Part shown: positions 21,916 to 60,755 of the stretch, piece after piece | Layout: each line of letters starts with the position of its first letter | Numbering within the stretch: position 1 is the first letter of the stretch | Assembly (NCBI GenBank): GCA_002269645.1 | Contig: NIVC01000157.1 | Location: 248,001 to 312,000 of the forward strand | Length of the DNA stretch: 64,000 nt | Source: Macrostomum lignano | Lineage: Eukaryota | Reading direction: 5' to 3' | Made by a program: the position numbers and the translations under genes | Notes under the pieces: model-generated | What the model was told of the DNA's origin: nothing | What the model saw: only the letters and a program-made list of their open reading frames with translations | The model's database searches: none

Positions 21916-22689
21916 CTCAAAAATTAATCTATTCATGCTCAAATTCTCCTCAAAAACTCCGGAATCAGAACTCCATCGGGTTTACTATTGAATCCCAAAT
22001 TAAATTCACTCATTAAAAATCCAACAATAAAATTTAGTCAGATCTTCAAATTTCAGGAAAATATTTATTTAAGCTTTTATCATCCCGATAGTTTCCCAAG
22101 AACACCAACTGACTCCAGCATTCCCTCTGGATTCACTGCACTTTTTCATCCCAACGCGCTTTCATCGCTCAAACGCAGAAGGATCGGAAATTAAAAGAAG
22201 ATCGCCTGGCGCAAATAAGCAGAGAGATTGATGGTGGACCTCCCGACTCCAGTAGACATGGCCCCCGGGTCCCCCGCACTTACCGGTTATTGACCTGTCA
22301 ATTTACCAGGGTATTGGAGCGGGCAGTGCTAAACTGGCACGCACCAGATGTTTGTCTATTTATATTCCACTCTGGGTAAGTTGGCCATCTGCCTTTATCT
22401 TAATTCAATATTACCTGGGAGGCTGCGCGATGATGGAGAGTCCTACGAGTGGCTGATGATGTCGGCTATATGGTTTTTTGTGTAATCTATACTCCATTCT
22501 GGGCAACCAGATAACGCCTTGTTGTAGCGGCAGTGGAGTCTGTTTTGACTGGGAGAGGGAAAAACAAGTTCCTCTTTTGACTGAGAGCGAAACAGATTGA
22601 CATGAAGGTTAAGCATGCATGGCTGCGGTTAGTCGTCAATAGTTATATTATTAGGCTGATAAGAGCGAGAGTAGACTGGGGTAAGAGGG

Positions 22690-22757
22690 AGAGAGACGGG
22701 ATGAGAAGGAGAGAGACGAGGGTGAGATGGAGAGATGAGGATGAGGGAGAGAGACGA

Positions 22758-22823
<66 letters not shown>

Positions 22824-24030
22824 CGAGAGAGAGGGAGAGAGACGAGGGAGAGAGACAGGATGAGAGAGGAAGAGAGACAGTGTGAGAGGGAGAGAGAGGG
22901 TGAGAGGGAGAGAGACAGGGTGAGAGGGAAAGAGAAGAGGGTGAGAGGGAGAGAGACAGGATGAGAGAGGGAGAGAGACAGGGTGAGAGAGAGACAGGGT
23001 GAGAGACAGACAGGGTGAGAGAGAGACTAAGTGAGAGAGAGAGACAGGGTGAGAGACAGACAGGGTGAGAGAGAGAGAGACAGGGTGAGAGAGAGAGACA
23101 GGGTGAGAGGGAGAGAGAGGGTGAGAGGGAGAGAGACAGGGTGAGAGGGAAAGAGAATAGGGTGAGAGGGAGAGAGACAGGATGAGAGAGGGAGAGAGAC
23201 AGGGTGAGAGAGAGACAAGGTGAGAGACAGACAGGGTGAGAGAGAGAGACTAAGTGAGAGAGAGAGAGACAGGGTGAGAGAGAGAGACAGGGTGAGAGAG
23301 AGAGACAGGGTGAGAGAGAGAGAGACAGGGTGAGAGAGAGACAGGGTGAGAGAGAGACAGGGTGAGAGAGAGAGACAGGGTGAGAGAGAGACAGGGTGAG
23401 AGAGAGAGACAGGGTGAGAGAGACAGACAGGGTGAGAGAGAGAGAGACAGGGTGAGAGAGAGAGACAGGGTGAGAGGGAGAGAGAGGGTGAGAGGGAGAG
23501 AGACAGGGTGAGAGGGAAAGAGAATAGGGTGAGAGGGAGAGAGACAGGATGAGAGAGGGAGAGAGACAGGGTGAGAGAGAGACAAGGTGAGAGACAGACA
23601 GGGTGAGAGAGAGAGACTAAGTGAGAGAGAGAGAGACAGGGTGAGAGAGAGAGACAGGGTGAGAGAGAGAGACAGGGTGAGAGAGAGAGACAGGGTGAGA
23701 GAGAGAGAGAGAGACAGGGTGAGAGAGAGAGACTAAGTGAGAGAGAGAGACAGGGTGAGAGAGAGACAGGGTGAGAGAGAGAGACAGGGTGAGAGAGAGA
23801 GACAGGGTGAGAGAGAGAGACAGGGTGAGAGAGAGAGAGACAGGGTGAGAGAGAGACAGGGTGAGAGAGAGACAGGGTGAGAGAGAGAGACAGGGTGAGA
23901 GAGAGAGACAGGGTGAGAGACAGGGTGAGAGAGAGAGACAGGGTGAGAGAGAGAGACAGGGTGAGAGAGAGAGACAGGGTGAGAGAGAGAGACAGGGTGA
24001 GAGAGAGACAGGGTGAGAGAGAGACAGGGT

Positions 24031-24061
<31 letters not shown>

Positions 24062-25310
24062 TGAGAGAGAGACAGGGTGAGAGAGAGAGACAGGGTGAGA
24101 GAGAGAGAGAGACAGGGTGAGGGAGAGAGACAGGGTGAGAGAGAGACAGGGTGAGAGAGAGACAGGGTGAGAGAGAGAGACAGGGTGAGAGAGAGAGACA
24201 GGGTGGGTGAGAGAGAGAGACAGGGTGAGAGAGACAGGGTGAGAGGGAGAGAGACAGGGTGAGAGAGAGAGAGAGAGAGAGACAGGGTGAGAGAGAGACA
24301 GGGTGAGAGAGAGAGACAGGGTGAGAGAGAGAGACTGGGTGAGAGAGATACAGGGTGAGAGAGAGACAGGGTGAGAGAGACAGGGTGAGAGAGAGACAGG
24401 GTGAGAGAGAGACAGGGTGAGAGAGAGAGACAGGGTGAGAGAGAGAGACAGGGTGAGAGAGAGAGAGACAGGGTGAGAGAGAGACAGGGTGAGAGAGAGA
24501 CAGGGTGAGAGAGAGAGACAGGGTGAGAGAGAGAGACAGGGTGAGAGACAGGGTGAGAGAGAGAGACAGGGTGGGAGAGAGAGACAGGGTGAGAGAGAGA
24601 GACAGGGTGAGAGAGAGAGACAGGGTGAGAGAGAGAGAGACAGGGTGAGAGAGAGAGACAGGGTGAGAGAGAGAGACAGGGTGAGAGAGAGAGACAGGGT
24701 GAGAGAGATAGAGACAGGGTGAGAGAGAGACAGGGTGAGAGAGAGAGACAGGGTGAGAGAGAGAGAGACTGGGTGAGAGAGATACAGGGTGAGAGAGAGA
24801 CAGGGTGAGAGAGAGAGACAGGGTGAGAGAGAGACAGGGTGAGAGAGAGACAGGGTGAGAGAGAGAGACAGGGTGAGAGAGAGAGACAGGGTGAGAGAGA
24901 GAGACAGGGTGAGAGAGAGAGAGACAGGGTGAGAGAGAGAGACAGGGTGAGAGAGAGAGACAGGGTGAGAGAGAGAGACAGGGTGAGAGAGAGAGACAGG
25001 GTGAGAGAGATAGAGACAGGGTGAGAGAGAGAGACAGGGTGAGAGAGAGACAGGGTGAGAGAGAGAGACAGGGTGAGAGAGAGACAGGGTGAGAGGGAGA
25101 GAGACAGGGTGAGAGAGAGACAGGGTGAGAGAGAGACAGGGTGAGAGAGAGAGACAGGGTGAGAGAGAGAGAGAATGGGTGAGAGAGAGACAGGGTGAGA
25201 GGGAGAGAGACGGGATGAGAAGGAGAAAGACGAGGGTGAGATGGAGAGATGAGGATGAGGGAGAGAGACGAGGGAGAGAGAGAGAGAGAGGGAGAGAGAG
25301 AGAGAGAGGA
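22690..25310 (+). repeat. GA-rich compound satellite ((GA)nCAGGGT)
   Basis: Read directly; explains the SLSHPV-type ORFs. Confidence 0.95.
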
Positions 25311-26832
25311 GGGCGCCTCCAATCTCAGGCACGGACGCGGTACATGTAAAAAGGACAAACAAGTCAAGTTGATTTGAGTTGCCGATATTTCGAATTAGGT
25401 AAATTCTTCGTCAGGGCAAATGAAAAGTAGCGACAAGTGGTGTTGTAAAAGTTATTAAATAGGCGGGTTAGAGGGGAGAGAGAGTAGGCAGGTAGATAGA
25501 GAGCGTACGGTATGTACACTTGGTGTGAGTCGATAAAACACTATTAGAGTTGAAAATGCAAAATAAAAAACAGTGCACAAATAAAGTGAACCGCACGTGG
25601 GCTGCAGCGATCCTACACACGAAATAAATAATGGAATAGTGCGACTGCACCGGTGTCTAAAAAGGGGAAAGAGTTCTAAGCACTTTACAAAATTGACCTC
25701 AATAAATAAAAAAGGTGAAAAGGCCCTCAAAAACTAAAAAGAGCAATTGTACGATAAGCAAAAGAGTAAAAGTAAAAAGTGTAATAAAAAGTACAGGGTG
25801 TCAAGAAACAATAGAAATGTTGATGCAGAATAAATGCTGAGAATATAAAAAAGCTGTGCTTGGGCTAGCGATGAGAATAAAAAAATTTCTAAGAAAGGAG
25901 CAATAAAAGGCTTGGAAGGTACCGGCACGGTCTGACAAAGGTAAGTAGTAGGGAAAGTGAAGTAAAAAATCAAAGGAAAAAATAAAAAAATTCAATCAGT
26001 GGTGGACTCCAGTCGACTGGGACAGAGCAGCTGCCGGAGGTTCCGCCCTTTGGTGTAGGCGGGCAGCACCGGGGCCTCGCAGCACCGGGCCACGCGGTCC
26101 TTCACCGCGGCCACCAGGGCGTCCGACCTCGCACAATGGGGCAGGATCAGCGGGATGGCCGGGTTGTGCAGCGTGCCGGCAAGCTCGTTGACGCCGTGCG
26201 GGTTTGAGTCTTTAACACCTCGATGAGCTTGGCCTCGTGGCGCTGCCGCCGCTCGTTCGCTCTGGGTCCCGTGCCGTCACGAGACCAGATGCCGGTGAAG
26301 GCGAAGTCCGCCAGACTGTGGCCATCACTGGTGAAATGGCGGGCCACCGGAGTGTCACGGGCGTGCCGGATGTCGCCGATGTACGCCAGCATGCGGCCGC
26401 GGATGCTGTTGGCGGTCTCGCCTACGTAGACCGTGTGGTCGCACCGGCGGCAGAACACGGCGTAGACGGCGTTGGTGGCGTTGCAGTCGATCCGCTGACT
26501 GATGATGAGCTGGACTGTCGTGGCTGCTGATCCGGGGCAGACGGAGGCGAACCTGGCGTGCGCCTGGCAACACCTGCACAGCCGGGTCGGGTTTCACGGC
26601 AGAAAGCCGAATTCCCACCGTCTCGTCGGGTAGAAGCCCAGCTCCGTCAGCATCTCGTACTTGATCGTGCGCAGGAACCGCCGATTGTAGCCCTGGTGTT
26701 GCACCAGACTTGAAAACAGCCCGGTGCACGCTGCGTCGAAATCGGCCATCAGGGAACACCGCCGGGCGTATTTGAGGAGCTGGGACTTCACCACGCCCCG
26801 GAACGTCCGCTTCGGGTGGAAAGAGTGGCTTT
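25311..26832 (-). mobile_element. 5'-truncated Penelope-like element (Neptune-like): RT thumb, Cys-rich linker, GIY-YIG endonuclease, 3' UTR with hammerhead
   Basis: SFHPKRTFRGVVKSQLLKYARRCS...QGYNRRFL (thumb); GFLP*NPTRLCRCC...IDCNATNAVYAVFCRRCDHTVYVGETANSIRGR...PVARHF...HSLADF...HEAKLIEVL..PHGVN (endonuclease). One stop at 26594, one frameshift near 26205, final stop at 25992. Inserted in a GA satellite. Confidence 0.88.
25379..25419 (-). ncRNA. Minimal type-I hammerhead ribozyme (PLE-associated)
   Basis: Minus strand TTGCC-CTGACGA-A-GAATT(TACCT)AATTC-GAAA-TA-T-C-GGCAA: perfect 5-bp stems I and II, core CUGACGA/GAAA, AUC cleavage triplet (cut between 25384 and 25383). Confidence 0.8.
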
Positions 26833-27449
26833 TAGTGAGAGAGAGACAGGGTGAGAGAGAGAGACAGGGTGAGAGAGAGAGAGAATGGGTGAGAGAGAGA
26901 CAGGGTGAGAGGGAGAGAGACGGGATGAGAAGGAGAAAGACGAGGGTGAGATGGAGAGATGAGGATGAGGGAGAGAGACGAGGGAGAGAGAGAGAGAGAG
27001 AGACGAGGGAGAGAGACAGGATGAGAGAGGAAGAGAGACAGGGTGAGAGGGAGAGAGAGGGTGAGAGGGAGAGAGAGAGAGACAGGGTGAGAGACAGGGT
27101 GAGAGAGAGAGAGAGAGAGACAGGGTGAGAGGGAGAGAGAGGGTGAGAGGGAGAGAGACAGGATGAGAGAGAGAGAGAGACAGGGTGAGAGAGAGAGAGA
27201 CAGGGTGAGGGACAGGGTGAGAGGGAGAGAGAGGGTGAGAGGGAGAGAGACAGGGTGAGAGGGAAAGAGAATAGGGTGAGAGGGAGAGAGACAGGATGAG
27301 AGAGGGAGAGAGACAGGGTGAGAGAGAGACAGGGTGAGAGAGAGACAGGGTGAGAGAGAGACAGGGTGAGAGAGAGACAGGGTGAGAGAGAGAGAGACAG
27401 GGTGAGAGAGAGACAGGGTGAGAGAGAGAGACAGGGTGAGAGAGAGAAA

Positions 27450-27490
<41 letters not shown>

Positions 27491-28512
27491 TGAGAGAGAG
27501 ACAGGGTGAGAGAGAGAGACAGGGTGAGAGAGAGAGAGAGAGACAGGGTGAGAGGGAGAGAGAGGGTGAGAGGGAGAGAGACAGGGTGAGAGGGAAAGAG
27601 AATAGGGTGAGAGGGAGAGAGACAGGATGAGAGAGGGAGAGAGACAGGGTGAGAGAGAGACAGGGTGAGAGAGAGAGACAGGGTGAGAGAGAGAGACAGG
27701 GTGAGAGAGAGAGACAGGGTGAGAGAGAGAGAGAGAGACAGGGTGAGAGAGAGAGAGAGAGAGACAGGGTGAGAGAGAGACAGGGTGAGAGAGAGAGAGA
27801 GAGACAGGGTGAGAGAGTGAGACAGGGTGAGAGAGAGACAGGGTGAGAGAGAGACAGGGTGAGAGAGAGAGAGAGAGAGAGAGACAGGGTGAGAGAGAGA
27901 CAGGGTGAGAGAGAGAGACAGGGTGAGAGAGAGAGACAGGGTGAGAGAGAGAGACAGGGTGAGAGAGAGACAGGGTGAGAGAGAGACAGGGTGAGAGAGA
28001 GAGAGAGAGAGACAGGGTGAGAGAGAGACAGGGTGAGAGAGAGAGACAGGGTGAGAGAGAGAGAGAGAGACAGGGTGAGGGAGAGAGACAGGGTGAGAGA
28101 GAGACAGGGTGAGAGAGAGACAGGGTGAGAGAGAGAGAGAGAGAGACAGGGTGAGAGAGAGACAGGGTGAGAGAGAGACAGGGTGAGAGAGAGACAGGGT
28201 GAGAGAGAGAGACAGGGTGAGAGAGAGAGACAGGGTGAGAGAGAGAGACAGGGTGAGAGAGAGAGAGAGAGAGAGACAGGGTGAGAGAGAGACAGGGTGA
28301 GAGAGAGACAGGGTGAGAGAGAGAGACAGGGTGAGAGAGTGAGACAGGGTGAGAGAGAGACAGGGTGAGAGAGAGACAGGGTGAGAGAGAGAGAGAGAGA
28401 GAGACAGGGTGAGAGAGAGACAGGGTGAGAGAGAGAGACAGGGTGAGAGAGAGAGACAGGGTGAGAGAGAGAGACAGGGTGAGAGAGAGACAGGGTGAGA
28501 GAGAGACAGGGT

Positions 28513-28543
<31 letters not shown>

Positions 28544-29068
28544 TGAGAGAGAGACAGGGTGAGAGAGAGAGACAGGGTGAGAGAGAGAGAGAGACAGGGT
28601 GAGGAGAGAGACAGGGTGAGAGAGAGACAGGGTGAGAGAGAGACAGGGTGAGAGAGAGAGAGAGAGAGAGACAGGGTGAGAGAGAGACAGGGTGAGAGAG
28701 AGACAGGGTGAGAGAGAGACAGGGTGAGAGAGAGAGACAGGGTGAGAGAGAGAGACAGGGTGAGAGAGAGAGACAGGGTGAGAGAGACAGGGTGAGAGAG
28801 AGAGACAGTGTGAGAGAGACAGGGTGAGAGAGAGAGACAGGGTGAGAGAGAGACAGGGTGAGAGAGAGAGACAGTGTGAGAGAGAGAGACAGGGTGAGAG
28901 GGAGAGAGACAGTGTGAGAGAGAGAGACAGTGTGAGAGAGACAGGGTGAGAGAGAGAGACAGGGTGAGAGAGAGAGACAGGGTGAGAGAGAGAGACAGTG
29001 TGAGAGAGACAGGGTGAGAGAGAGAGACAGGGTGAGAGAGAGACAGTGAGAGAGAGATGAGAGAGACT
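26833..29068 (+). repeat. GA-rich compound satellite ((GA)nCAGGGT), second block
   Basis: Read directly. Confidence 0.95.
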
Positions 29069-29524
29069 GTGTCAATAAAGTGGCCCAGAACCAGTCACTG
29101 TATCAGGCGGCCGGATCCTATTTCCCAAATAGTCAAAAATAGCTAAGAAAAAAGTTTCCTTTGAGCATTCGAGACTAAATTTCCTACCATGGACATTGTT
29201 GGGATGTGACTGTCTGTCTCCCTCCCTGCCTGCCTCCGCCTCTTGCTTGTTCAAATATTTGAACCTGCTTCCACACCCCCAGCCCCGTGTCTTGCAGAAT
29301 CCTTCGGATTGCAAGCTGAGAGAGCCGGCTGCCTGAAGTATTAATTCTAACCCAAGCTATTCAGCACGTTTTGTGGAAACCTGCAGCATTGTTTCCGTTT
29401 TTTATTAGCCATGATATCGCTATTTATAGACAGGTATATAGAGAGCTGCATCGATTCAGTGGGAGATAAGGTTTTGCCTCCTTGAGATTAAACATTTCCC
29501 AACCTCAGAGGTTGAAACATCTCC

Positions 29525-29915
29525 CACCGAGATTAGAGGCTTACCGACTCCACAGAGGTTAGAGAATCTCCCCATGAGATCAGAGGCTTACCGACTCCGC
29601 AGAGGTTAGAGAATCTCCCCATGAGATTAGAGGCTTACCGACTCCGCAGAGATCAGAGAATCTCCCCATGAGATTCAAGAGGCTTACCGACTCCGCAGAG
29701 ATTAGAGAATCTCCCCCTGAGATTAGGACTTACTGACTCCGCAGAGATTAGAGAATCTCCCCATGAGATTAGAGACTTACCGACTCCGCAGAGATTAGAG
29801 AATCTCCCTGATGAGATCAGAGACTTACCGACTCCGCAGAGATTAGAGAATCTCCCCGATGAGATCAGAGACTTACCGACCCCAAAGAGATTAGAGAATC
29901 TCCCCCCTGAGATTA
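29525..29915 (+). repeat. ~47-bp tandem repeat (GAGATTAGAGAATCTCCCCATGAGATTAGAGGCTTACCGACTCCGCA), about 8 copies
   Basis: Read directly. Confidence 0.85.
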
Positions 29916-30368
29916 GAATACCCTATAGAGTCTCCATAGACTTACAGTTTTTACGTAAAGCTATGATGAACTAAAAGTGGCTTTTAGTGCACTGCACAGC
30001 CGAACCGCACAAGGCATTCCTTGCGCAAAAGCAGCTGGCTCAGAAATGAAACAGTGTTGGCTCGCCTCCGTTGCCAAGCAAAATTACCAACTCAATTCAA
30101 AAATTTATTAACGGCTGTAATTCAAATTCAGCTCCTGCTTGCTCACTTTCGTGTTACCGGATCCGCCATCGCGGAGGCGGCCAGAGTCGGGTCGTGGGGT
30201 TTTATTTGCGCTTCCGGAATGCCGCGCTCGTAAAAAGCTTGCAGTTCAATCAGTTTTATAGACTGGATTAGCATAATTAGCATTGAGATGGGGCTGAGAG
30301 TCTGCGAGCGCCTCAGCATTGCCTTCTTATTTATGACTGCCTGGCACCATCCGCTGCGACTGCTGATT

Positions 30369-31225
<857 letters not shown>

Positions 31226-31619
31226 CATCTTTTCTATTAAATCTTGTGACAAAAATGTATCTCTTTAAATCATTTTTAGCTTCTTCATTTTTTTTTCGTT
31301 AGTCCAGTTTGAGTGGGGAAACAGGATTTTAATGAGATCCATGTAATGCGTGACAACCACGCTTCATTAGCCTCGACTTTCGACAGGTCGTCAGCCTCGT
31401 CAAAAAGCTGATTTCAAAATTTTTCTATTAGATTGTAAAATTCTGAACCTGTTTGCGCGTGAAGCTTTCTAGACAAGCTCGGCACAGCGGGAGTTGACGC
31501 CAGGGCATTCTTGAACATTTTTGAGCTGGTTCTGCCCTGCTGGGAGGGGCATCGTGGAATTGAAAAAAAGTAAGCTGGGCGTTTTATTCAAATTATTTTC
31601 GGAGTGTGCACGTTAGACA

Positions 31620-34603: not shown

Positions 34604-35645
34604 ATGACAACTCTTGGAAAGTAAGCTGGCTTTTATTTTTTACTTTTTCACTTCGTTTTGCTCAGTTTCACCAGATTCTGCTAACCGATTTTTCACTCGG
34701 CTCTCATAAATGAGCGTTTTTGTTCGGACCTGTAGGCCCCATGACCAAGAGAAACTGTTTGCGGCATCGCTGCATTAGGGCAGCCATTCAAGAATGCCAT
34801 TGCGCTGAGTTGCCATGCAGTTTCTGTGTGGTTGCTATGCGGTTTCCATGCAGTTGCTATGCTGTTGCTATGCGGTTTCCATGCAGTTGCTATGCAGTTG
34901 CTGTGCGGTTGCTGTACCGTTACTATTCAGTTGCTATTCAGTTGCTATTCTGTTGCTATGCGGTTTCCATGCAGTTGCTATGCTGTTGCTATGCGCTTTC
35001 CATGGGGTTGCTATGTAGTTGCTATGCTTTTCCCATGCCGATGCTATATGCCATTACCATGCAATTTCTACGCGGTTAATATACAGTTACTTTTCAGTTG
35101 TAATGCGGTTGCTATGCGGTTTCCATGCTATTTCAAACTTAATCTCGAACGCATCGGTTCGCCACTCTACCCTGCTCAGGCCGCAGACAGTCCGCCTGGC
35201 CGCTCCGCTGGCTCTGCTCCTGCTGTACACCATCTGCTTCTGCGCCAAACCAACGGCCGGTCTGCCAGCTTCCGCCAGCCTGATGGAGCGCCGAGCCAGC
35301 TACTGGCCGGGCATGTGGCAGTTCGACCGAAGCGACGGCGGCGGCTACGGGGAGCGCTACTACGACTACTACGGCGGGGCCAGGTACGCCAAGCGAGGCT
35401 ACTACTGGCCGGGCATGTGGAACTTCGATCGCTACTACGACGAGAGCTCGCCACTGGAGGGCAAGCGCGCCTACTACTGGCCTGGCATGTGGCGTTACCA
35501 GCAGCGCCGGCCGTCCAAGCGGTCCTACGGCTACGGCAACGACCATCCGTACTGGCTGGGCAAAGCCTGCGGCGAGACTGGCGACCCCGCCGCCTGCAGC
35601 ATCCTGAACGGCCTGCACAACAACTATTATTACTACTATGATTGA
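34604..35645 (+). CDS. Secreted prohormone-like protein, 160 aa, with three YWPGMW repeats and a C-terminal Cys-pair peptide; exons 34604-34620 and 35180-35645
   Basis: ATG ACA ACT CTT GGA AA|GTAAGC ... CTCAG|G joins in frame to give MTTLGKPQTVRLAAPLALLLLYTICFCAKPTAG (signal-like), then RR-ASYWPGMWQFDR, KR-GYYWPGMWNFDR...G-KR-AYYWPGMWRYQQ-RR, KR-SYGYGNDHPYWLGKACGETGDPAACSIL...YYYYYD*. Codon usage is GC-rich like the other exons. Confidence 0.85.
34810..35130 (+). repeat. Degenerate GTTGCTAT-based repeat in the prohormone intron, also present at 35845-36050
   Basis: Read directly; explains the Cys/Tyr-rich ORFs 34720..35079, 34815..35018 and 35972..36157. Confidence 0.8.
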
Positions 35646-39756: not shown

Positions 39757-42115
39757 TCACCAGAAGTGACACTTGTCATTATCAGTCAGGTACATTGGAT
39801 CTCCCGGCTTGCATTTGAACACCCTGGCGAAGTCCTTCGACTGCATCACCTGACCGTTCACTCTGGGATGCGGAGGCGAGTGACGCTTACCCTTGAATAC
39901 AGAGATCAGGGTGTTCTTTTCCGCCTTTGTGCAGAGCAGCTGAGCATTGTGGATGAAGAACAGCTGATCCGGTGTCAGCCCCGCCAGCTTCTCTCCTGGA
40001 ATCAGCCGAGACCGCCTCCCAGACTTTGCCGCACTGCTTCTGTAGGCTCGGAATGCGGAATTGATGCCAACAATATCGGCAAAATTTTCGTCAAACTTCC
40101 GCACTCCTGCATTCATTGAATTGTCCCAAATGTCAGATTTTGCAAACTCAGGATCGATGATCTGGTTGTAGAAATCTGCCAGACATTGAGATTGCTTGTC
40201 ATACCGCAGCGCTGTGACATTGTCAAATACACCTATCTGTTCCTCTCCAACGCTAATTTTTTTATTGCCTAATTTGTCAAAGGCGTGCCCGACCTCGTGG
40301 CCGACTGTGCCGCCGATGCCTCCGTACAGCAGGCAGTCGGGGTAGCCCTTCATGTAGACTTTGGTGAGCAGCAGGCCCAGGTAGATGAAGAGCGAATTCA
40401 GGTGTAGCGAGTAATGAGCGTTGACAGTAAACATTCTTGAAAAAATGTCACTCGGCATTAAGTCCTGTTTGTCAGCTGTCAAAATCCAAAGTCGATTCTG
40501 AAGCTGAGTGCTTTTAAACTGCAAAACAACATCGCCAAATGTTCTGCTTTGGTTAACTTGAGCAGCAACGTTTGAGTAGCCTTCGGTGAACTCGGACATG
40601 TTGAACTGGGGGTAGCCGACGGTGCTCCGAATGGCGTCGAGCTTCTTCTTAATTGCTGCCTTACTCGGCTGCTCAATCCACGCCTCGCTGTCCACATTCT
40701 CCCACATGGCCTCCTTGATGTCGCCGATTACCACTTTCACTGAGTTGAAGTCGTCTGTGACGAAGGCGCTGCTGAACATCTGCAAAGCCACTGGCGGCAT
40801 GGAGCCCAGCATCATGTCCATGCACAGTCTTGAGCTGTTCCGGCCTTCTTTCTCATGAATGAGATACTTTTGTTGCCCGAAAAGGTTTTTAAAGAATTTG
40901 AACGATTCGTCTGGAAGAAAATTGACTGCCGACAGTGCAGAGTCCAGGAGAATAAAGTCGTAGTACGGTCCCTGTCTGTGCTCCAGCTCCGTTGTGAGCT
41001 GCTCGAGTACAAAAAATAATAGCGGGTACCTAATAATCTTGACTCTCATTGAGGGAGGTAACTTATTGGCTGAATACTTGCTCACAGCGCTGTAAAACTC
41101 CGTCCAGTTAAAGTTGAGATTTTCTGCCTCAAACTGAGTAAAATTCTGCAGCTGTTCCAGATGGTAAGGACCAACTTTCAAATACGATTCGCCTTTGTTT
41201 AACATTTGCTGAACTGCAGGCTTTATCTGATTTATACTAACAGTCAAATTCAGGTCTATGAGATCACTGAAATCTTCTAATGCAGAAATTCCGTCATTGA
41301 AAACCTTATTCCAGGATTTCAGGGTAAATAGGTAGTATGGTGACGAGTGCAATCTCAGACTCCGCTCCACCGAGCCTGGCGACAATCTGAACAGATCCGA
41401 TGTACCGGATATCACCAGTCTCGCTAGGAAGTCTTCGATGCCTGAGTAGCCCTCTAGAAAGTCCAACAAAGGTCTCACTAATGATTTCATGTCGAAAGGT
41501 CGTTCTCCAGTCTGCCAGCTGTTCGGGAGAAATTCCTCTTTCTTAGAATTCAGAACGCTGGAGCCGCGCCAATCCATGCAGGTCCCGTAGATGGATCGCA
41601 GAGTCTGGAACAGCTGCGCTTCGCTTGCGTCTCTGGGCTTGGACAAGTTCTTGAAGTACATCATCTCAAATAGATTTCCTTGAATGGAGTTGTCCTCCTG
41701 TAGTACTGAGCCCACGGTCTCGGCGGTGAAGGGGTGGCTTTTATGGAAACCGCCGCAGGCGAAGCTGTAGAAGTCTTGGCATGGGTCCGCAGATCGGTCG
41801 ATGTGGCTCTGCAGCAGTGCGCTTGCACTTATGCAGGCCTCGCTGGTGCACAGGCTGGGATGCTTGGGAGTGGCTGCTCCAGGTGGTAACCGAGCTGTGC
41901 TGAGAGCGTAGAGCAGAACGAAAACTAGAAGCAGAATTGACAGAACCGCAATCAGCAAGAGCATAAGCAGGCGTCTTGCTCGATCCAGTCGAGTTGAAAA
42001 CTCAACTCTGCCGCCATCGAGAATGCTCTGTTGGCAATGCAGCGATTTGAGGGTGGGGTTAATCCAGTTTGACTGTCTGACAGATGGAATTTCCCAATGA
42101 AAATGTTCTTACCAT
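39757..42115 (-). CDS. M13 (neprilysin/ECE-like) zinc metallopeptidase, type II membrane protein, about 757 aa; exons 42115-42113 (ATG only) and 42027-39757
   Basis: 735-aa ORF with TM anchor LLLIAVLSILLLVFVLLYAL, C-x4-C and DPCQDFYSFACG, VNAHY, GHEVGHAFD (HExxH), DENFADIVG (third Zn ligand), HSPPHPRVNG and terminal F.C.PGDPM...KCHFW. ATG|GTAAGA at 42115 and CAACAG| at 42028 give an 85-bp phase-0 intron adding the cytoplasmic tail MSILDGGRVEFSTRLDRARRLL. Confidence 0.93.
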
Positions 42116-46006: not shown

Positions 46007-47496
46007 TCACCGCATCCGGCAGTTCAGACAGCAGCGCCGCAGCTGCGACTTGAAATGAGGAATCGATAGCGAATAGATGACGAAATTCGCTACAGAATCG
46101 GCCGTGGTCAGCACGTTGGCGACGCCCATGAACATGTTGATGCCCGGCCATTCTAGATCTTTAATCGCCCCAGCAACCAGCAGAGGCAGCTCACAGATGA
46201 CAAAGGCCGAGCAGAGTACCAGGACCGTGCGGTTCACCGACCTGACGAAAAGCAGACAGCGGTTTCAAAATTCTTAACTACGTCAGATGAGTAACAGAAT
46301 GAAAGTGAATTTTAGAGTGTTGGTTTCTCTGTCAAATGTCAAATGTCAGATGTCAGATGTCAGATGTCAGATGTCAGATGTCAGAGAGTGTACATCCATG
46401 ACGATTGGAAAGTCAGGGTCGCTGTACACCCTATGTGAGCGTGTGTACAGTGTGTATTCAGGAGTTAGCGAAAAGGACAGAAGTGTCGTCAACCAGCCAG
46501 ATTTTACACCTACTTCTGGCCCAACAACGGAGAATAGTAGTCGACAGGTAAACCGCCAGTTCTGAAAAGTCGTTTCAATCTTATAACCAAATTTTGCGCT
46601 TACCCAGCCTGCGCCTCTCGCTGCCGTCTCAGTCTGACGAAGAACGGAGCCGGGACATTCCTTAACAGCTGGCGGTCCGCCCGCTTCAGCTGGTACAGGG
46701 TGAGGCAGCTGACTACGAGAAGACAGAACACTGGGAGCAGCGAGTGCAGCGCAAAGAAGCACCTGGGGTAGATCCAGTAGGCAGCGGATGTGGCAAATGG
46801 GGCGGCCTTGATCGCTACAATCTTCTGAGTAGCCGGGCACATGGTGTACCTCACCTCCAGCGCCCGGGGCAGAGTCACCAGCAGCGACAGCCCAGCCAGA
46901 AGGCCGGATGCCTGGTTCACCGACCGGCTCGGCGGCGGGGACGTCATGAGGGTGCGTCCGCTGACGGCGCGCCACCTTCGCCAGGCGATGTGCACGATGA
47001 GCCAGTTGCGGGTCAGCGAGCTGGCCTTGTACACCAGCCAGAGCGGGTAGAGCATCAGCTTAGACAGCCAGCCGGGACCCGACGGGAGCCGGTGGCCGGC
47101 AGGCGGCGCGGTCAGCAGGTAGTACAGCTCGAACAGCAGCGCCGACAGACTGAGGACCACCTCGCAACCGGTGAGGTGCAGCAGCATCTGGGACAGGGCG
47201 CTGCAGGTGCATAAGTTACCTGTAGTTTCGTTACTAATCGAGTGGTTTAAGCTGCTGTTGCTGTGCCGGACATTTCTCTGGCGGTAGTGCCGATACCAGA
47301 ACACGTAGAAGGACGCAGCGGAGACGACCAAAGCCAGCAGTGCCAGCCCTGCTTTGAACAGGTACAGCACGTCCGTGGCAGTCTGTTCGGGATTGGATCC
47401 GAACCAAAACACCATCCTTGATGGCAATTCAAGATTTGAGCAGTTCTCAGCGAACCACAAGTCGCTGTCAGCTTCTACTTCCGTTGGAGTAGTCAT
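46007..47496 (-). CDS. Rhodopsin-family (class A) GPCR, FMRFamide/peptide-receptor-like orphan, 375 aa; exons 47496-46604 and 46241-46007
   Basis: Seven hydrophobic segments; TM3 YP...RNWLIVHIAWRRWRAV (DRY variant), TM4 LPRALE, TM5 SLLP, TM6 FVICELP, TM7 SVANFVIY, helix 8 FKSQLRRCC. GG|GTAAGC...TTTCGTCAG|G phase-2 intron keeps the frame. Confidence 0.9.
46331..46385 (+). repeat. 7-bp repeat (GTCAGAT/GTCAAAT) in the GPCR intron
   Basis: Read directly. Confidence 0.85.
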
Positions 47497-52319: not shown

Positions 52320-53272
52320 TGAGTCACTGGATGATGGAGTTACTGAATGATTGATTCACTGAATGATTGAGTCACTAAAAGATTGAATCACTATATGATT
52401 AGGTAACTGAATTATTGAGTCTCTAGATGATTGAGTCACTGAATGATTAAGTCACTGAATGATTGAGTCACTGAATGATTGAGTCACTTCATGATTGAGT
52501 CACTTCATGATTGAGTCACTGAATGATTAAGTCACTGAATGATTGATTCACTGAATGATTGATTCACTGAATGATTGAGTCACTGAATGATTGAGTCACT
52601 GAATGATTGGAATGATTGAGTCACTGAATGATTGGAATGATTGAGTCACTGAATGATTGATTCACTGATTTATTGAGTCACTGAATGATTAATTCACTGA
52701 ATGATTGATTCACTGAATGATTAAGTCACTGAATGATTAAGTCACTGAATGATTAAGTCACTGAATGATTAAGTCACTGAATGATTAGGTCACTGAATGA
52801 TTGATTCACTGAATGATTGAGTCACTGAATGATTGATTCACTGAATGATTGATTCACTGAATGATTGAGTCACTGAATGATTGATTCACTGAATGATTGA
52901 GTCACTGAATGATTGAGTCACTGAATGATTGATTCACTGAATGATTGAGTCACTGAATGATTGAGTCACTGAATGATTGAGTCACTGATTTATTGATTCA
53001 CTGAATGATTGAGTCACTGAATGATTGATTCACTGAATGATTAAGTCACTGAATGATTGAGTCACTGAATGATTGAGTCACTGAATGATTGATTCACTGA
53101 ATGATTGAGTCACTGAATGATTGATTCATTGATTGATTGAGTCACTGAATGATTGAGTCACTGAATGATTAATTCACTGAATGATTGAGTCACTGAATGA
53201 TTGATTTACTGAATGATTGAGTCTCTAGATAATTGAGTCACTAAATGATTGAGTCACTGAATGATTGAGTCA
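52320..53272 (+). repeat. 16-bp minisatellite (TGAGTCACTGAATGAT) upstream of the RFamide gene
   Basis: Read directly; many units contain TGAGTCA. Confidence 0.93.
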
Positions 53273-53615
53273 CAAGATGGTTTTGCGGCTGAGGAACTGT
53301 GTAACTGAGTAAGTGAATGAGCGACTGAGTGACTTCCGCGGACCGATCAAGAGACCACAATGCTGCATGAGACCTTCCTGCATGAGACCAGCAGCTGGAG
53401 GGCCTCCCCAGTAGAGTTGCTGGTGTCGCATTTTGATTCGCTGTCCCGTGCCTTCCTTAATCCGCTGTCATCATCAGATCCACTGCAAATTTTCGGAGGC
53501 TGAATCGTCTATTTAGGAGGCCGACCTGAGATGCAGCAGGTCTTCGCCCGCCGCGCTGAACCGAGAAAAATCGAAATCTACTTGAGAAACCTACAGATAA
53601 AGTACTGAAGCCGAC

Positions 53616-53666
53616 ATGACGCTACGAATCTTCTGCCTGCAGGTCAGTTATTTAGTTTGTTTGTTT

Positions 53667-53747
<81 letters not shown>

Positions 53748-54171
53748 CTAGCCAGTTAGTTAGTTAGGTTGGTCACTGTGTGCTGTTTCGCCCCTGCCGG
53801 GTCTTCAGGTACTTCTGGTGAGCCTGGTGGCACTGTCGATGATGGCTCCATCGCATTGCTCACGCGTCGACGAGCTGGAAGAAGACCAATCTGGAATCCG
53901 CCTGATCAGACCGCGGCATGCTTCGCTTGACAAGCTGGAGCGGAGTCTGTACCGCCTGCTGCTGACTTCGCCGGAGCATCGGAAACAAGGTGGAGCCGCC
54001 ACCGCCGCCGCCGCCAAGCAGCTCGCGGCCGCTCTGGCAGCTGAGGAGCCCGGAGAAGACGTGGTTCGAATTCGGTGAGGTTTTTATGACGAATTACAAG
54101 TATATTCGAGACGTTTGAAAAAACTAAATCACCAATTTATAACAAAACTGGTTACTTTCAGATTCGGCTGA
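53616..54171 (+). CDS. RFamide neuropeptide precursor (NPY/NPF- or sNPF/PrRP-superfamily-like), 100 aa; exons 53616-53642, 53809-54074 and 54162-54171
   Basis: Spliced product MTLRIFCLQ|VLLVSLVALSMMAPSHC-SRVDELEE...EHRK-QGGAATAAAAKQLAAALAAEEPGEDVVRIR|FG*: signal peptide, RK site, terminal RF-G amidation signal. Introns are GT-AG, phases 0 and 2; AATAAA at 54233. Confidence 0.85.
53660..53765 (+). repeat. (GTTA)n microsatellite in intron 1 of the RFamide gene
   Basis: Read directly. Confidence 0.9.
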
Positions 54172-55207
54172 ATCCAGTTCAAAGTTGGCTTGTTTCTAAG
54201 AAGTCTCTCGCACAATGTCACCAAGTTGAACTAATAAAGTACACGGCATGAACAGTTATTGTTCTGATGTAATATCTTTTTGCAATGTGATGAGCCCGCA
54301 ATTGTAAACAATTAATAAATAGTTGATCATTGGACTTTACCAGTCGGCGATCTTACTGTAGTGAGATCGATCGTTTCTGCACATCAATTGTGATTTTGCG
54401 AGGTGCCGTCAAAATTGGCTATTTTCAAGTTTTTTGTTTTAATGAAAGTTTCATTTTAAGATTTTATTATTTATTAATATTATTCAAATAATTTTGATTT
54501 AGTTAACACACAATACACGAGTCACGATAGAAGGTAGACTCATATTGAGAATTCAGAGCTATGTATTTGACAATTAATATTTGAGAATTAAAAGTTAAAT
54601 AACAATTAAAAATAAGAAGTTGATAATTATTTAAATTACGTATGTGGGATTCGTGATAAATACGCAGAATTACAATTTATAAAAATATCCTCAGAATAAC
54701 GATTAAACAAGCTGATACAGTTTGACACAGGCAGTAATTAAATATATAAATTTTCAATGTTCATTCTTTGTTTACTTCAGCTTCTAAAGAATATATTTTG
54801 AGCAACAAAGATATATAGGGTTAGGTAAAAAAAAATTTTTTGCCACTTTCGTGTCAGCAACTGCGGAATTAAATAAGTGCGTGCATGCAGCACATTGTTT
54901 TATAATGAACGTAAAATAGGAATTATAACAAACAAGCAAAATGGCGTCAAAATAGCTACTAAACGAGGAGACAAAGATCCAGAATATCTTTTTTTAAATC
55001 AAAAAATAAATGTTGCGTTTCTGTTACTTTTAATATATTATATGAGAAATACTTTTTATTTATAGGCAACTTCATTCATAAACAACATTTTTGGTTAGAG
55101 GCTTCAGTTAGTCGCAAAGTTTCTACATTAAAGTTGTCTTTGGGTAAAACTTTTTGATCATGTTGAACCTGAAACAGTTCAGCTGCTGCAGATAATCTCG
55201 GGTATAC

Positions 55208-58200
55208 TCAAATGTCCATCTTTTTCATTCGCTCCATCAGCAACTCTACAGCCCGGTCATTCTCCTCCTTGGACAGAACCGGCTGCCTCTCGCCGCGACC
55301 CCCTTGGTAGCTCTGTGGGATGGGAGCGAATCTTGCTGTTTCTACTTTTTCCCTATGAAAATGAAATGGGAACTTGAAAACAAATCAAAGAATAGTGTAC
55401 AAGTCAGCAAGAAGCAGTGCTGCGAGAAGACGTGGCTTTTAAATTTCTTGCTTTAACCATAGTGGTATATTAGCTTTGGCTGGTGAACTTTTTTTGACAG
55501 AAAGCTTTGCAATTTTAGAACACAGACATGAGGTTCTAGGATGGCTATTAGTGAGTCAAGATAACTCAGACTGAGATACAGATATTTACTCATGCAGCGA
55601 CAATGCTCTCAGGTGATGTGATCGTGAGTAGCCCTTTTATCTGAAACAGAGTTAAGAAAAAGTACATAATATCGCTTAAAACATGTTTTGCTTTGAGGCA
55701 GATGGCCTCTATTTTTAAAGACAAGACGCACATGTACTTTTAAAAGCACTTGTCGAGAATAAGATCGAATACTTGAAATCAAATTTTAATTTCTAGGATA
55801 GAGTAGTGGCACATAAAAGAATCTTAGATAGTAGCGGCACATCAAAGAATCTTAGATAGTAGCGGCACATCAAAGAATCTTAGATAGTAGCGGCACATCA
55901 AAGAATCTTAGATAGTAGCGGCACATCAAAGAATCTTAGATAGTAGCGGCACATCAAAGAACCTTAGATAAAAGCGGCACATCAAAGAATCTAGGATAGT
56001 AGCGGCACATCAAAGAATCTTAGATAGTAGCGGCACATCAAAGAATCTAGGATAGTAGCGGCACATCAAAGAATTTATCAAACTCACCACGCTGAAGGGC
56101 CTCGGGTTGAGACTCCGGGCGCTGGAACGAGCGCTGCTCATCCGTGACAAGGAGTGCTGGCCGTGCGCCTGTAGAATTCAGTTCGCACTTAATCATAAAT
56201 CATAATTACTCCGGAAAAATTTCGTAAAAAAATGATAATTGCGTATTACTCCTACCTCGGAATCCCATTCAAGATCCTCTTCATTCTCGCATTGGTTGAG
56301 AGCGGCCAGGTATTCTAAATGCGATAAATTAACGCATAATTTAGTAACAAATTGTTTGAGAACAATAATGTGTAAGGCAGGTGTCTTGACTCCCATTAGT
56401 TCAAGGACAACACTCGACACTAATGGATCGAGAGTCCCTGTAGCTATGCAAGTTCCGCGATCAACCATCCGTCTTTTCGAGTCTTTTCGAGTAGCTCTCT
56501 TAATATCCCAGCTTACGCCTAGTTCGAGACTTGACTCACAAAACTAGTTAAAAGACAGTTTTTACCTTTCTAGAACTGAGGTGTTGGATTCATGGGTTGC
56601 TGTGCCGCACCAGAGAGTCCCTCTTGCACGCACGCGACAGTGATGATATCAATCAAGATTAACTCAGCCTGAATAAATTGACATTTTACCCCCAAATAGA
56701 GCAATATGAAGTCCCTAATTCTCTTTTTCTACCTAATTCTAGTTCTCGATTAAATTCCATATCATAATCCCCAGTCTCACCCTTGCGCTTCTTGGGGTTG
56801 ATGATGCGAAAGATGCGAATCAGGCTGGCGCTGTCCTCCAGACCCGCGCCCCCGAAGATGTAGCACATGTGCCGGTGTATCCAGGCACCGTGGTGGATCA
56901 GGTTCTCCGGCTGCCCACCAGACGCTGGCAGAGCCGACGGCACCTTCCAAGTCCGCTTGTAGAGGCTGAACTTCATCAGCGGCTCCTGGACCGGGCCGCC
57001 ATCCGGGAACACGCAGTCGTTGTAACCCCCGAATAGGAACAGGTCCTTGAACTGGTGCGCGGTGAGGCTGTGCCCGGCTCGCGGCATCGGCAGCAGGTGA
57101 CCCTCGACTGGGACGCGCGACCACTGCAGGGTGGCTGCAGAAATCGGGAAATTATTCTGAATTGGCTACTGTAAGTAGAGGCCATTTGAACTTCAGCGCT
57201 TTCGATGCTTTATGAAGATTCAACTGACTGGAAAATATGGTATTTAGTTCAGCTGGAATCCATGCTAATGAAGCTGGAATCCATGCTAATGAAGCTGGAA
57301 TCCATGCTATTGAAGCTGGAATCCATGCTAATGAAGCTGGAATCCATGCTAATGAAGCTGGAATCCATGCTAATGAAGCTGGAATCCATGCTAATGAAGC
57401 TGGAATCCATGCTAATGAAGCTGGAATCCATGCTAATGAAGCTGGAATCCATGCTAATGAAGCTGGAATCCATGCTAATGAAGCTGGAATCCATGCTAAT
57501 GAAGCTGAAATCCATGCCATTTAAGCTGGTAACCATGCTAATGAAGCTGAAATCCATGCTAATGAAGCTGGAATCCATGCTAATGAAGCTGGAATCCATG
57601 CTAATGAAGCTGGAATCCATGCTAATGAAGCTGAAATCCATGCCATTTAAGCTGGTAACCATGCTAATGAAGCTGGAATTCATGCTAATGAAGCTGGAAT
57701 CCATGCTAATGAAGCTGGAATCCATGCTAATGAAGCTGGAATCCATGCTAATGAAGCTGGAATCCATGCTAATGAAGCTGGAATCCATGCTAATGAAGCT
57801 GGAATCCATGCTAATGAAGCTGGTAACCATGCTAATGAAGCTGGAATTCATGCTAATGAAGCTGGAATCCATGCTAATGAAGCTGGAATCCATGCTAATG
57901 AAGCTGGAATCCATGCTAATGAAGCTGGAATCCATGCTAATGAAGCTGGAATCCATGCTAATGAAGCTGGAATCCATGCTATTGAAGCTGGAATCCATGC
58001 TAATGAAGCTGGAATCCATGCTAATGAAGCTGGAATCCATGCTAATGAAGCTGGAATCCATGCTAATGAAGCTGGAATCCATGCTAATGAAGCTGGAATC
58101 CGCAATTTTGAACGTGCGGGGTCCATCTAGCTCAACCGTCAAGAACAGTTGACAAACACACATACATGCATCATCTCTGTGAGTCCCTGGCTATGAAACT

Positions 58201-60755
58201 ATTCATCCACTTTTTCCTTGTCTTTGAGTACCGGGGCCACTCACCAGTGTCCAGCTGGTGCAAGTCGTTGTAAAAGCAGCCCTGACCTCCGGTGCCTCCG
58301 AACACGTACAGGCTCTGTCCCACCGCAGCGGCCGCGTGTTCGCATCTGGGCGACGGCGGCGCGCCGCTGACCGTTGCCCGGTGCCAGTGCTGCGCCATGA
58401 TATCGTACACAAACGTCGTATTGCTAAGGACGCCGTTGCTATGGCCGCCGAATACAACAAGCTGCGATTCGATCATGTTGCTGGTGTTGTACACCTGCTC
58501 GGGCTCCTCTCCGCTGGCCTTGACGTGGGTCCACTTGCGCACCACTGCAGAGTTTATTTGCAGATTTTTGGGCTTTTCAACTTCGGAATGAAAAATTTAA
58601 GGATATCAACTCGGCTTTTAATACCTTAGGGGCGTCGATACCAGAGGCGCCAGCACCAGAGGCGCCAGCACCAGAGGCGCCAGCACCAGAGGCGCCAGCA
58701 CCAGAGGCGCCAGCACCAGAGGCGCCAGCACCAGAGGCGCCAGCACCAGAGGCGCCAGCACCAGAGGCGCCAGCACCAGAGGCGCCAGCACCAGAGGCGC
58801 CAGCACCAGAGGCGCCAGCACCAGAGGCGCCAGCACCAGAGGCGCCAGCACCAGAGGCGCCAGCACCAGAGGCGCCAGCACCAGAGGCGCCAGCACCAGA
58901 GGCGCCAGCACCAGAGGCGCCAGCACCAGAGGCGCCAGCACCAGAGGCGCCAGCACCAGAGGCGCCAGCACCAGAGGCGCCAGCACCAGAGGCGCCAGCA
59001 CCAGAGGCGCCAGCACCAGAGGCGCCAGCACCAGAGGCGCCAGCACCAGAGGCGCCAGCACCAGAGGCGCCAGCACCAGAGGCGCCAGCACCAGAGGCGC
59101 CAGCACCAGAGGCGCCAGCACCAGAGGCGCCAGCACCAGAGGCGCCAGCACCAGAGGCGCCAGCACCAGAGGCGCCAGCACCAGAGGCGCCAGCACCAGA
59201 GGCGCCAGCACCAGAGGCGCCAGCACCAGAGGCGCCAGCACCAGAGGCGCCAGCACCAGAGGCGCCAGCACCAGAGGCGCCAGCACCAGAGGCGCCAGCA
59301 CCAGAGGCGCCAGCACCAGAGGCGCCAGCACCAGAGGCGCCAGCACCAGAGGCGCCAGCACCAGAGGCGCCAGCACCAGAGGCGCCAGCACCAGAGGCGC
59401 CAGCACCAGAGGCGCCAGCACCAGAGGCGCCAGCACCAGAGGCGCCAGCACCAGAGGCGCCAGCACCAGAGGCGCCAGCACCAGAGGCGCCAGCACCAGA
59501 GGCGCCAGCACCAGAGGCGCCAGCACCAGAGGCGCCAGCACCAGAGGCGCCAGCACCAGAGGCGCCAGCACCAGAGGCGCCAGCACCAGAGGCGCCAGCA
59601 CCAGAGGCGCTAGCACCAGAGGCGCCAGCACCAGAGGCGCCAGCACCAGAGGCGCCAGCACCAGAGGCGCCAGCACCAGAGGCGCCAGCACCAGAGGCGC
59701 CAGCACCAGAGGCGCCAGCACCAGAGGCGCTAGCACCAGAGGCGCTAGCACCAGAGGCGCTAGCACCAGAGGCGCCAGCACCAGAGGCGCCAGCACCAGA
59801 GGCGCCAGCACCAGAGGCGCCAGCACCAGAGGCGCCAAAAACAAAATAATCACGCATTAGGAAACTGAAAAAATGGGAACAGAGGCGCCTCAACTGCTGC
59901 ATGGGTCGATAAATCAGCTGTCAGAAGAGCGCCATAATTTAAGCCAGCCAATTGAGAGGGGCCGTGACCCCCTTGCGGCTAGGCTACGTCTCTGCATGGC
60001 CTTATATTAGTCCTTGACATTGTACGGTAAGTGTAGCGCTTATGAGGGTCATACTGCATACAATTTCATATCATTGAAATGCAACACTAGAATTGCTTAC
60101 AAACGTCGAACTGGTAGGTTCCGGGAATGCAGGAGGCCTCATTAAGATTGCTCTTGCCGCCAAACAGGATTAATAAATTCTCGAATAGGCTGGAATTAAA
60201 AAAATACATTGTTAAAAATATATTTTTTTTCGTTCTGTCAATGACAGTTCTTAAGTTCAGATTTGTATTTTTCTGGTTGATAAAGTTGTGATAAAGTTAG
60301 CAAATTTACTACTACAAATAGTGCAAAAGGGGGCACTTACTGCAAGTGGTGATAGGCCCTGGCCTCAGGCACGTCTCCATGCCCTGACGAAATTTTCACA
60401 CATTTTAATCTTTGACTATCCTGAACTGAAAAAATGAATTTTATGATGCCAGCTGATAAGGAAGGTTATGTATAAATTCTTTTAAGATATTTGTCCATCT
60501 TTGAAAGCATTACTGCACAGAAATTTAATAATCAATTTAGTCCAATGTACCTGAGATTTTCCAGATGTCGTTGTAGAATGTGATTTTCTTTCCAGACTGG
60601 AAAATTGCAAAAACCAGATCAAAGTAAGGAATTTCCGCAGGAATGCATTAAGCAAGAAATTCTATCTTCAAAAATGTATTCTTACCTTCGAAAGCTTGAA
60701 CCCTCCGTGCAAATACAAATCATTATTCCTAGTCTCCGTTATAGCTGTGTTGTGT
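55208..60755 (-). CDS. Kelch-repeat beta-propeller protein (RABEPK/KLHDC-like), 5'-partial; exons 60755-60686, 60596-60551, 60425-60341, 60189-60101, 58544-58245, 57134-56781, 56168-56088, 55311-55208
   Basis: Phase-compatible GT-AG joins give HNTAI...LYLHGGF..FYNDIWKI...GDVPEARAYH...LILFGG..YQFDVLVRKW...LVVFGG...PSPRCEHAAAAVGQSLYVFGG...YNDLHQLDTATLQW...PMPRAGHSL...LFLFGG...CYIFGG...AVELLMERMKKMDI*: six kelch repeats plus a tail. The start exon was not located. Confidence 0.88.
55795..56075 (+). repeat. 28-bp tandem repeat (GATAGTAGCGGCACATCAAAGAATCTTA), intronic
   Basis: About 10 copies read directly. Confidence 0.9.
57250..58100 (+). repeat. 21-bp minisatellite (AAGCTGGAATCCATGCTAATG), intronic
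   Basis: Read directly; explains ORFs 57152..58163. Confidence 0.95.
58638..59836 (+). repeat. 15-bp minisatellite (CCAGAGGCGCCAGCA), about 80 nearly identical copies, intronic
   Basis: Read directly; explains ORFs 58577..59902 and 58618..59853. Confidence 0.97.

Follow-up and report, generated by a model that had tools for sequence, protein, structure and literature searches.

The stretch of Macrostomum lignano DNA analysed here (64,000 nucleotides (nt) of contig NIVC01000157.1, assembly GCA_002269645.1, positions 248,001 to 312,000; hereafter the window, whose own numbering is used below) carries on its forward strand a small gene that encodes a putative precursor of an amidated RFamide peptide. 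The gene is real and transcribed, and it has three exons. Translation of these exons gives a 303-nt coding sequence (CDS) and a product of 100 amino acids (aa), MTLRIFCLQVLLVSLVALSMMAPSHCSRVDELEEDQSGIRLIRPRHASLDKLERSLYRLLLTSPEHRKQGGAATAAAAKQLAAALAAEEPGEDVVRIRFG, which reads MTLRIFCLQ|VLLV...EDVVRIR|FG* with the splice junctions shown as bars, so that its C-terminal end is VVRIRFG-stop.

Coding exon 1 (53616-53642) specifies Met1-Gln9, the start of the signal peptide, and runs from ATG ACG to CTG CAG|gtcagt, a phase-0 donor. Intron 1 (53643-53808; 166 nt, phase 0, 36% GC) consists mostly of an (AGTT)n microsatellite of 30.5 copies at 53646-53767. Coding exon 2 (53809-54074; 63% GC) begins at the acceptor gtcttcag|GTA CTT and extends from Val10 to base 2 of the Arg98 codon, where the donor CGA ATT CG|gtgagg is found; it holds the remainder of the signal peptide (53809-53859, to about Cys26), an acidic/basic spacer, the pair Arg67-Lys68 (53980-53985) and Gln69 (at 53986), with which an Ala-rich peptide opens. 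Intron 2 (54075-54161; 87 nt, phase 2, 30% GC) lies inside the Arg98 codon, splitting it as CG|A. The coding part of the terminal exon (54162-54171) follows its acceptor as ttactttcag|A TTC GGC TGA, that is, the third base of Arg98, Phe99, Gly100 as amide donor, and the stop codon. It is followed by a probable 3′ untranslated region (3′UTR; 54172-54260, 3′ end approximate) with an AATAAA polyadenylation signal at 54233-54238; the terminal exon, earlier described as 10 nt long, therefore consists of 10 coding nt and the 3′UTR. A 16-bp tandem repeat, ACTGAATGATTGAGTC, is present in 17 copies at 53000-53273, some 340 bp ahead of the start codon.

Splicing of intron 2 completes Arg98 (CG + A) and adds the codons for Phe, Gly and stop, so that an mRNA must be spliced there to encode the RF-Gly amidation signal. 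When intron 2 is retained, the frame continues as CGG TGA and the protein ends in ...VVRIR. There are 21 AG acceptors within 390 nt after the donor at 54074, and an RFG-stop end is obtained from 54162 alone. The motif AG-N-TTY-GGN-stop occurs once on the two strands of the window, at 54160, the expectation being about 0.5 per strand. The acceptor count, the rarity of the motif, the GC contrast between exon 2 and the introns, and the AATAAA signal all argue against a chance origin of the RFG-stop end. A tblastn search with the precursor found no paralogous exon in the window.

The spliced product is identical at 100/100 residues to a public 'hypothetical protein', PAA89281.1 (BOX15_Mlig021140g1, Mlig021140.g1), whose CDS spans 556 nt of the contig, corresponding to 53616-54171. 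The gene, which the original prediction made from the DNA letters had called hidden, is thus already public, though unnamed and without an assigned function. The same prediction held that the list of open reading frames (ORFs) misses the gene, which is true only in part, as exon 2 is listed there as an 86-aa ORF (53818-54078) ending RIR*. Its splicing scheme (53616-53642/53809-54074/54162-54171, giving ...EDVVRIR|FG-stop with a phase-2 intron in the Arg codon) was confirmed both by translation and by the identity to PAA89281.1. The M. lignano annotation was built solely from RNA-seq, combining genome-guided StringTie/TACO assemblies, a de novo transcriptome and TransDecoder ORFs (PMC5730564). 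Since it was made only from transcript assemblies, both splice junctions can indirectly be regarded as transcript-derived, a judgement based on how the annotation was constructed rather than on reads. A literature search revealed no relevant (neuropeptide) match for Mlig021140, RIRFamide or VRIRF.

Two further genomic copies of the gene were found (g2 and g3, at loci L001 and L002), both followed by the same kelch-repeat gene. The exons of the corresponding neighbour in the window (56686-58545, reverse strand) encode a kelch-repeat protein with a 417-aa product in the public annotation, and this gene is the conserved downstream neighbour of all three copies. Exons and splice sites are intact in 3/3 copies, and the probable 3′UTR and the flanks are likewise conserved. 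Intron 1 differs among the copies just in the length of the (AGTT)n array: at L001 (6030-6620) it is expanded by about 430 bp and contains AGCTAGCC variants, giving a gene span of 985 vs 556 bp with the exons untouched. Amino-acid differences among the copies are limited to R28S and K68Q.

The precursor has a signal peptide, an acidic spacer, a basic site, and a single long peptide that ends R-x-R-F-G-stop. The signal peptide was called heuristically, from Kyte-Doolittle values and the –3/–1 residues rather than with a dedicated predictor: after Arg4, residues 5-22 form a hydrophobic core (maximum of the 9-residue means, 3.2), and Ser(–3)/Cys(–1) precede Ser27. The RF-Gly site is single, and the peptide in front of it would comprise 31 aa (32 with Gly) if cut at Arg67-Lys68, or 45 aa if cut at K51-x-x-R54. 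The second site is common to all three copies, whereas Arg67-Lys68 is RQ in both of the others. As RK is RQ in two of the three copies, the mature N-terminus is uncertain, and a 31-aa peptide beginning with pyroglutamate (pGlu) is not a safe prediction. The earlier proposal that cleavage at RK releases an Ala-rich peptide of about 32 aa starting with Gln was therefore right about the composition and about Gln69, while the length is 31 aa (32 only with Gly) and the cleavage site is confined to the window copy. The 31-aa peptide has Ala at 11 of its 31 positions, no Tyr, and a single Pro at –10; no basic residue is found between Lys79 and Arg96 (16 positions before Arg96). A low-confidence AlphaFold single-sequence model (mean pLDDT 57.6) places helices at 49-62, 64-69 and 71-87, with residues 88-100 as a non-helical tail. 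The model is compatible with a helix plus a flexible tail and discriminates nothing.

The position of intron 2 links the gene to a known family. In NPY/NPF genes, a conserved phase-2 intron separates nt 2 and 3 of the Arg codon in the C-terminal RF/RY (PMC7314547, PMC2953531). The feature has been shown across phyla, with Mair et al. 2000 cited for it (PMC7314547), and the same architecture was found in 10/11 planarian npy genes (PMC2953531). Intron 2 of the Macrostomum gene has exactly this position and phase, and the C-terminal R-x-R-[FY] followed by a Gly amide donor is also present (V-V-R-I-R-F-G-stop). A profile of 10 planarian NPY prohormones (taken from PMC2953531, Table S5) retrieved NPFs of many phyla, and two flatworm NPF matches located on long genome contigs were used for a gene-structure check. 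In Sparganum proliferum NPF the junction reads ...GGT CGA CCA AG|gtaagc...ttattgtag|G TTT GGT TGA, and in Opisthorchis viverrini NPF ...GGC AGA CCA CG|gtaagt...ttgcag|G TAC GGA TGA. Both genes share with that of Macrostomum the phase-2 Arg intron, a terminal exon with exactly 10 coding nt, Gly-stop, and the lack of a C-flanking peptide. Together with the two cited papers, they bear out the earlier statement that this intron is an NPY/NPF hallmark.

The likeness extends to the layout of the precursor. In Sparganum and Opisthorchis, as in Macrostomum, the peptide is placed after a long acidic spacer and not directly after the signal peptide, and planarian NPY-7 (Schmidtea mediterranea) has a long spacer and ends ...GRPRYG-stop in the same manner. 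Planarian NPY-10 ends at GKR. The lack of a C-terminal extension, which had been called unusual, is thus shared with Sparganum and Opisthorchis NPF and with NPY-7, and in combination with the 10-nt coding tail it is what flatworm NPF genes normally show. The Macrostomum gene differs in its extra phase-0 intron in the signal peptide, which is without counterpart in the two neodermatan NPF genes. Moniezia expansa NPF is another flatworm NPF gene with the conserved intron, as Mair et al. 2000 is cited in PMC2953531 and PMC7314547. Schmidtea npy-1 to npy-11 (Collins et al. 2010, PMC2953531) form an expanded flatworm family partly defined by the same intron, and NPY-11 was admitted to it on gene structure despite its atypical C-terminus, RPRLamide (PMC2953531).

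We estimate the chance of an intron falling at the exact NPY/NPF position at about 0.7%, given two introns and about 300 coding positions. Since such a coincidence of intron positions has a probability of <1%, we take common descent with NPF genes as the better account, and this is our main argument. We lean, with modest confidence, towards reading the gene as a divergent NPY/NPF-superfamily prepropeptide that gives rise to a long amidated RIRFamide peptide and whose ancestry is visible only in its gene structure.

The sequence itself weighs against this assignment. Pfam Hormone_3 (PF00159) gave no match at E ≤ 10, and BLASTP against Sparganum NPF produced no alignment. With hhalign, the probability was 0.3% against the 10-member planarian NPY profile and 1.6% against a 39-sequence NPF profile, where the signal peptide alone was aligned. 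The alignment to the flatworm NPY family that had been proposed as a check, intron positions included, therefore gave a divided answer: the intron matched in two NPF genes and the profiles stayed below 2% probability. Among the 39 aligned NPFs, R-P-R-x-G is invariant, and Gly(–4), Phe and the helix Tyr are near-invariant. The Macrostomum peptide has Ile at –2 and Val at –4, and no Tyr as counterpart to the near-invariant column; the original prediction was correct that RIRFamide stands in place of GRPRFamide and that the NPF-typical tyrosines are absent. PP-fold features, namely a Y..L..LN.Y helix with conserved Tyr/aromatics and N-terminal prolines, are likewise missing from it. NPFs of the Sparganum/Opisthorchis/Moniezia type end [LIY]-G-R-P-R-[FY] and carry the Y..L..LN.Y helix, whereas the Macrostomum peptide ends V-V-R-I-R-F, is Ala-rich and contains no Tyr. 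Flatworm NPFs are mostly recognised by Pfam Hormone_3 or the NPF profile, unlike the Macrostomum precursor, and 10/10 aligned planarian NPYs retain R-P-R and the helix motif that it does not have. At the level of sequence, similarity to NPF/NPY beyond R-x-R-F-G is undetectable.

Other observations count on the same side. No orthologue from outside M. lignano came up when 1.84 billion representative proteins were searched with phmmer, and a word-indexed search of 5.8 billion clusters returned M. lignano copies only. The sole extra phmmer match, a 289-aa tandem-repeat protein, was discarded as spurious, six repeat stretches matching the end of the signal peptide and inflating the score. The basic pair in front of the 31-aa peptide is, as described above, not preserved among the copies. 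Divergence among the three copies amounts to 3/303 coding vs 7/675 non-coding positions, both about 1%, which is uninformative on selection and provides no evidence of it. The copies are too young to reveal selection, which fits a recently duplicated genome (PMC5730564).

NPY/NPF peptides typically have 36-40 residues, with one long peptide per precursor. In the Drosophila precursor, GKR is followed by a C-terminal extension, and the 36-aa peptide retains the helix with its Tyr. Drosophila melanogaster NPF ends GDRARVRFamide (PMC3011914) and is a bona fide NPF without Pro at –2. Its RVRFamide and the Macrostomum RIRFamide differ by Val -> Ile alone, a conservative change. This precedent establishes that Pro at –2 can give way to a beta-branched hydrophobic residue. 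The original reading as a divergent NPF/sNPF-superfamily member is partly supported: gene structure, precursor layout and the R-x-R-F-G ending speak for membership in the NPF family, and every sequence test fails.

A planarian-NPY profile search gave no match named M. lignano that would represent its canonical NPFs, short precursors being probably absent from the annotation. Most short prepropeptides of M. lignano are probably missing from the public protein set, hidden by ORF-length cut-offs and missed micro-exons.

The same failures of similarity would be expected if the gene were an orphan, that is, a lineage-specific macrostomid RFamide precursor unrelated by descent to NPY/NPF, with the intron match due to coincidence or convergence. 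We regard this as unlikely, though it is the alternative that fares best. It accommodates the lack of NPF-profile similarity and of any homologue among the 1.84 billion representatives, the absence of the invariant Pro and of the near-invariant Gly and Tyr, and the extra phase-0 intron in the signal peptide. It requires, however, that intron position, phase, the 10-nt coding tail and Gly-stop all match flatworm NPFs independently, which is improbable (roughly 1%). It also leaves aside the shared precursor layout, and neuropeptide precursors often diverge beyond recognition.

It is still less probable that the gene does not encode a signalling peptide at all, but a small fast-evolving secreted protein or a fortuitous transcript ORF whose RFG end has no role in processing. 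The combination of a signal peptide, basic sites and Gly after R-x-R-F amounts to the complete grammar of a neuropeptide precursor, and the NPF-type 3′ gene structure is hard to account for otherwise. On the other hand, neither the homologue searches nor the comparison of the copies gave evidence of conservation, the mature region is low-complexity and Ala-rich, and the structure model is of low confidence. Moreover, the ORF is exactly 100 aa long, the usual TransDecoder minimum, so that the precursor only just qualified. The Mlig021140 identifier is absent from the supplementary tables of two M. lignano papers (one on reproduction-related genes, the other a re-analysis of neoblast/germline signatures), a weak point against a non-signalling product, as the files may be incomplete.

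Membership in another known RF/RYamide family (sNPF/PrRP-type, NKY/NKY-2-type, or short flatworm FMRFamide-like peptides, FLPs) is very improbable. Flatworm FLPs are short YIRFamide, GYIRFamide and RYIRFamide peptides, usually several per precursor, each between basic sites. The YIRFamide end bears some likeness to R-I-R-F; the single peptide copy and the stretch free of basic residues count against this type, as they do against sNPF. sNPF precursors typically hold several short peptides, each flanked by basic sites, with the ending xLRLRFamide or a similar one (PMC7314547). The Macrostomum precursor has just one RFG site, and the stretch from Lys79 to Arg96 is free of further basic residues, so that sNPF fails; the closeness to sNPF noted earlier holds for the R-[IL]-R-F ending, which resembles RLRFamide, and for nothing else. 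In PrRP genes the peptide is interrupted by a phase-1 intron, either N-terminally or in its central part (PMC7314547), whereas the Macrostomum introns are of phase 0 (signal peptide) and phase 2 (Arg98), none being of phase 1. PrRP was rejected on this ground, and the earlier claim that PrRP-related genes share the Arg-codon intron proved incorrect.

NKY/NKY-2 was a serious rival among these families. As described from nemerteans, phoronids and brachiopods (Thiel et al. 2021, PMC8557429), its precursors terminate in a single R[YF]amide peptide of great length. They are about 110-150 aa long and, like that of Macrostomum, have a spacer and little or no C-flank; some peptides are Ala- or Gly-rich in the middle, and one NKY-2 ends in Gly-stop (PMC8557429). 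Unlike it, they have an invariant Trp near the N-terminus of the peptide and a K-x-[FML]-R-Y-G-(K/R) end (W, R, Y and G being the alignment invariants). An NKY profile search retrieved just two nemertean NKY-2-like proteins, and hhalign against the NKY/NKY-2 profile gave a probability of 1%. The NKY-2 gene of Tubulanus polymorphus, the sole NKY-type gene inspected, has a single coding exon and is intronless. Without Trp and without the K-x-[FML]-R-Y end, with the hhalign result and with an intronless Tubulanus gene for comparison, NKY/NKY-2 was rejected. The flatworm neuropeptide families surveyed by Koziol et al. in 2016 reportedly include NKY. Because the nemertean NKY-2 gene has a similar layout and lacks introns, it serves as a specificity control for the NPF-type intron.

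If the gene is a divergent member of the NPY/NPF superfamily, its product would be made as follows. The N-terminal signal peptide, cut after about Cys26, would route the precursor into the secretory pathway, where a prohormone convertase would cleave at Arg67-Lys68 in the window copy, or at K51-x-x-R54. With Gly100 as the last residue, peptidylglycine alpha-amidating monooxygenase could generate Phe99-amide without carboxypeptidase trimming. The predicted product, 31 or 45 residues long, is Ala-rich and largely helical except for a flexible ...VVRIRF-NH2 tail; Gln69 may form pGlu. Calculated monoisotopic masses are 3050.626 for the 31-mer amide, 3033.600 for its pGlu form and 4744.589 for the 45-mer amide. 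With its R-x-R-F-amide end, the peptide would activate a G-protein-coupled receptor (GPCR) of the NPF type or a related RFamide receptor. Retention of intron 2 would instead yield a ...RIR end that cannot be amidated.

Should this reading be true, M. lignano, a transgenic flatworm model, gains a candidate NPF-family ligand that sequence-based annotation could not name, and the phase-2 Arg-codon intron with its 10-nt coding tail can mark NPF-type genes after similarity has gone. A stronger proposition, that macrostomids have an NPF-derived gene which lost all PP-fold sequence hallmarks and kept just the Arg-codon intron and the R-x-R-F-amide end, strikes us as doubtful. If true, the peptide could serve this early-branching flatworm lineage as a separate ligand, or even as the principal one of the NPF receptor, and it would have to be explained how a receptor of the NPF type can do without the helix motif. 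Gene-structure 'fossils' could in that case reveal neuropeptide genes missed by profile searches. The planarian NPF-family member npy-8 controls sexual maturation (PMC2953531), which makes divergent paralogues worth testing by RNA interference. The gain is incremental: flatworms were already known to have expanded and atypical NPY families, and the gene model is in the public record.

Micro- and minisatellites abound in the window, which also contains retroelement fragments and spliced genes. An ORF at 35019-35645 on the forward strand contains three copies of YWPGMW, each after a basic pair (RRAS-, KRGY-, KRAY-), preceded by a hydrophobic, signal-like stretch, LAAPLALLLLYTICFCA, and followed by a Tyr-rich tail. 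It has no Pfam match, and one guessed full-length form was absent from the protein collection; from its letters it looks like another multi-copy prepropeptide. On the reverse strand, a 298-aa ORF at 46600-47496 has about five hydrophobic helices, with ...IAWRRW after the third. It gave no Pfam match at E ≤ 10 bar a weak one to YtpI, its exact sequence is absent from the protein collection, and it may represent exon 1 of a flatworm-specific GPCR.

Also on the reverse strand, 39757-41964 encodes, without interruption, 735 aa of an M13 (neprilysin/ECE-like) metallopeptidase (Peptidase_M13, 8.8e-39; Peptidase_M13_N, 1.6e-21), a class that degrades or processes neuropeptides; a gene with exactly the same product is not on record. 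Long terminal repeat (LTR) retrotransposon pol ORFs with reverse transcriptase, RNase H and an integrase zinc-binding domain occupy 7344-9653 (reverse strand). An ORF fragment at 1497-1916 (forward strand) has a C2 domain (E 5e-05) and probably forms one exon of a larger gene. Simple repeats make up very large arrays, extremely skewed between the strands, at 22000-30000, 30288-31268, 57152-58163 and 58577-59902. GC skew in these arrays reaches 0.68 at 24-26 kb, one array at 58-60 kb has 64% GC, and long spurious ORFs run through them in several frames.

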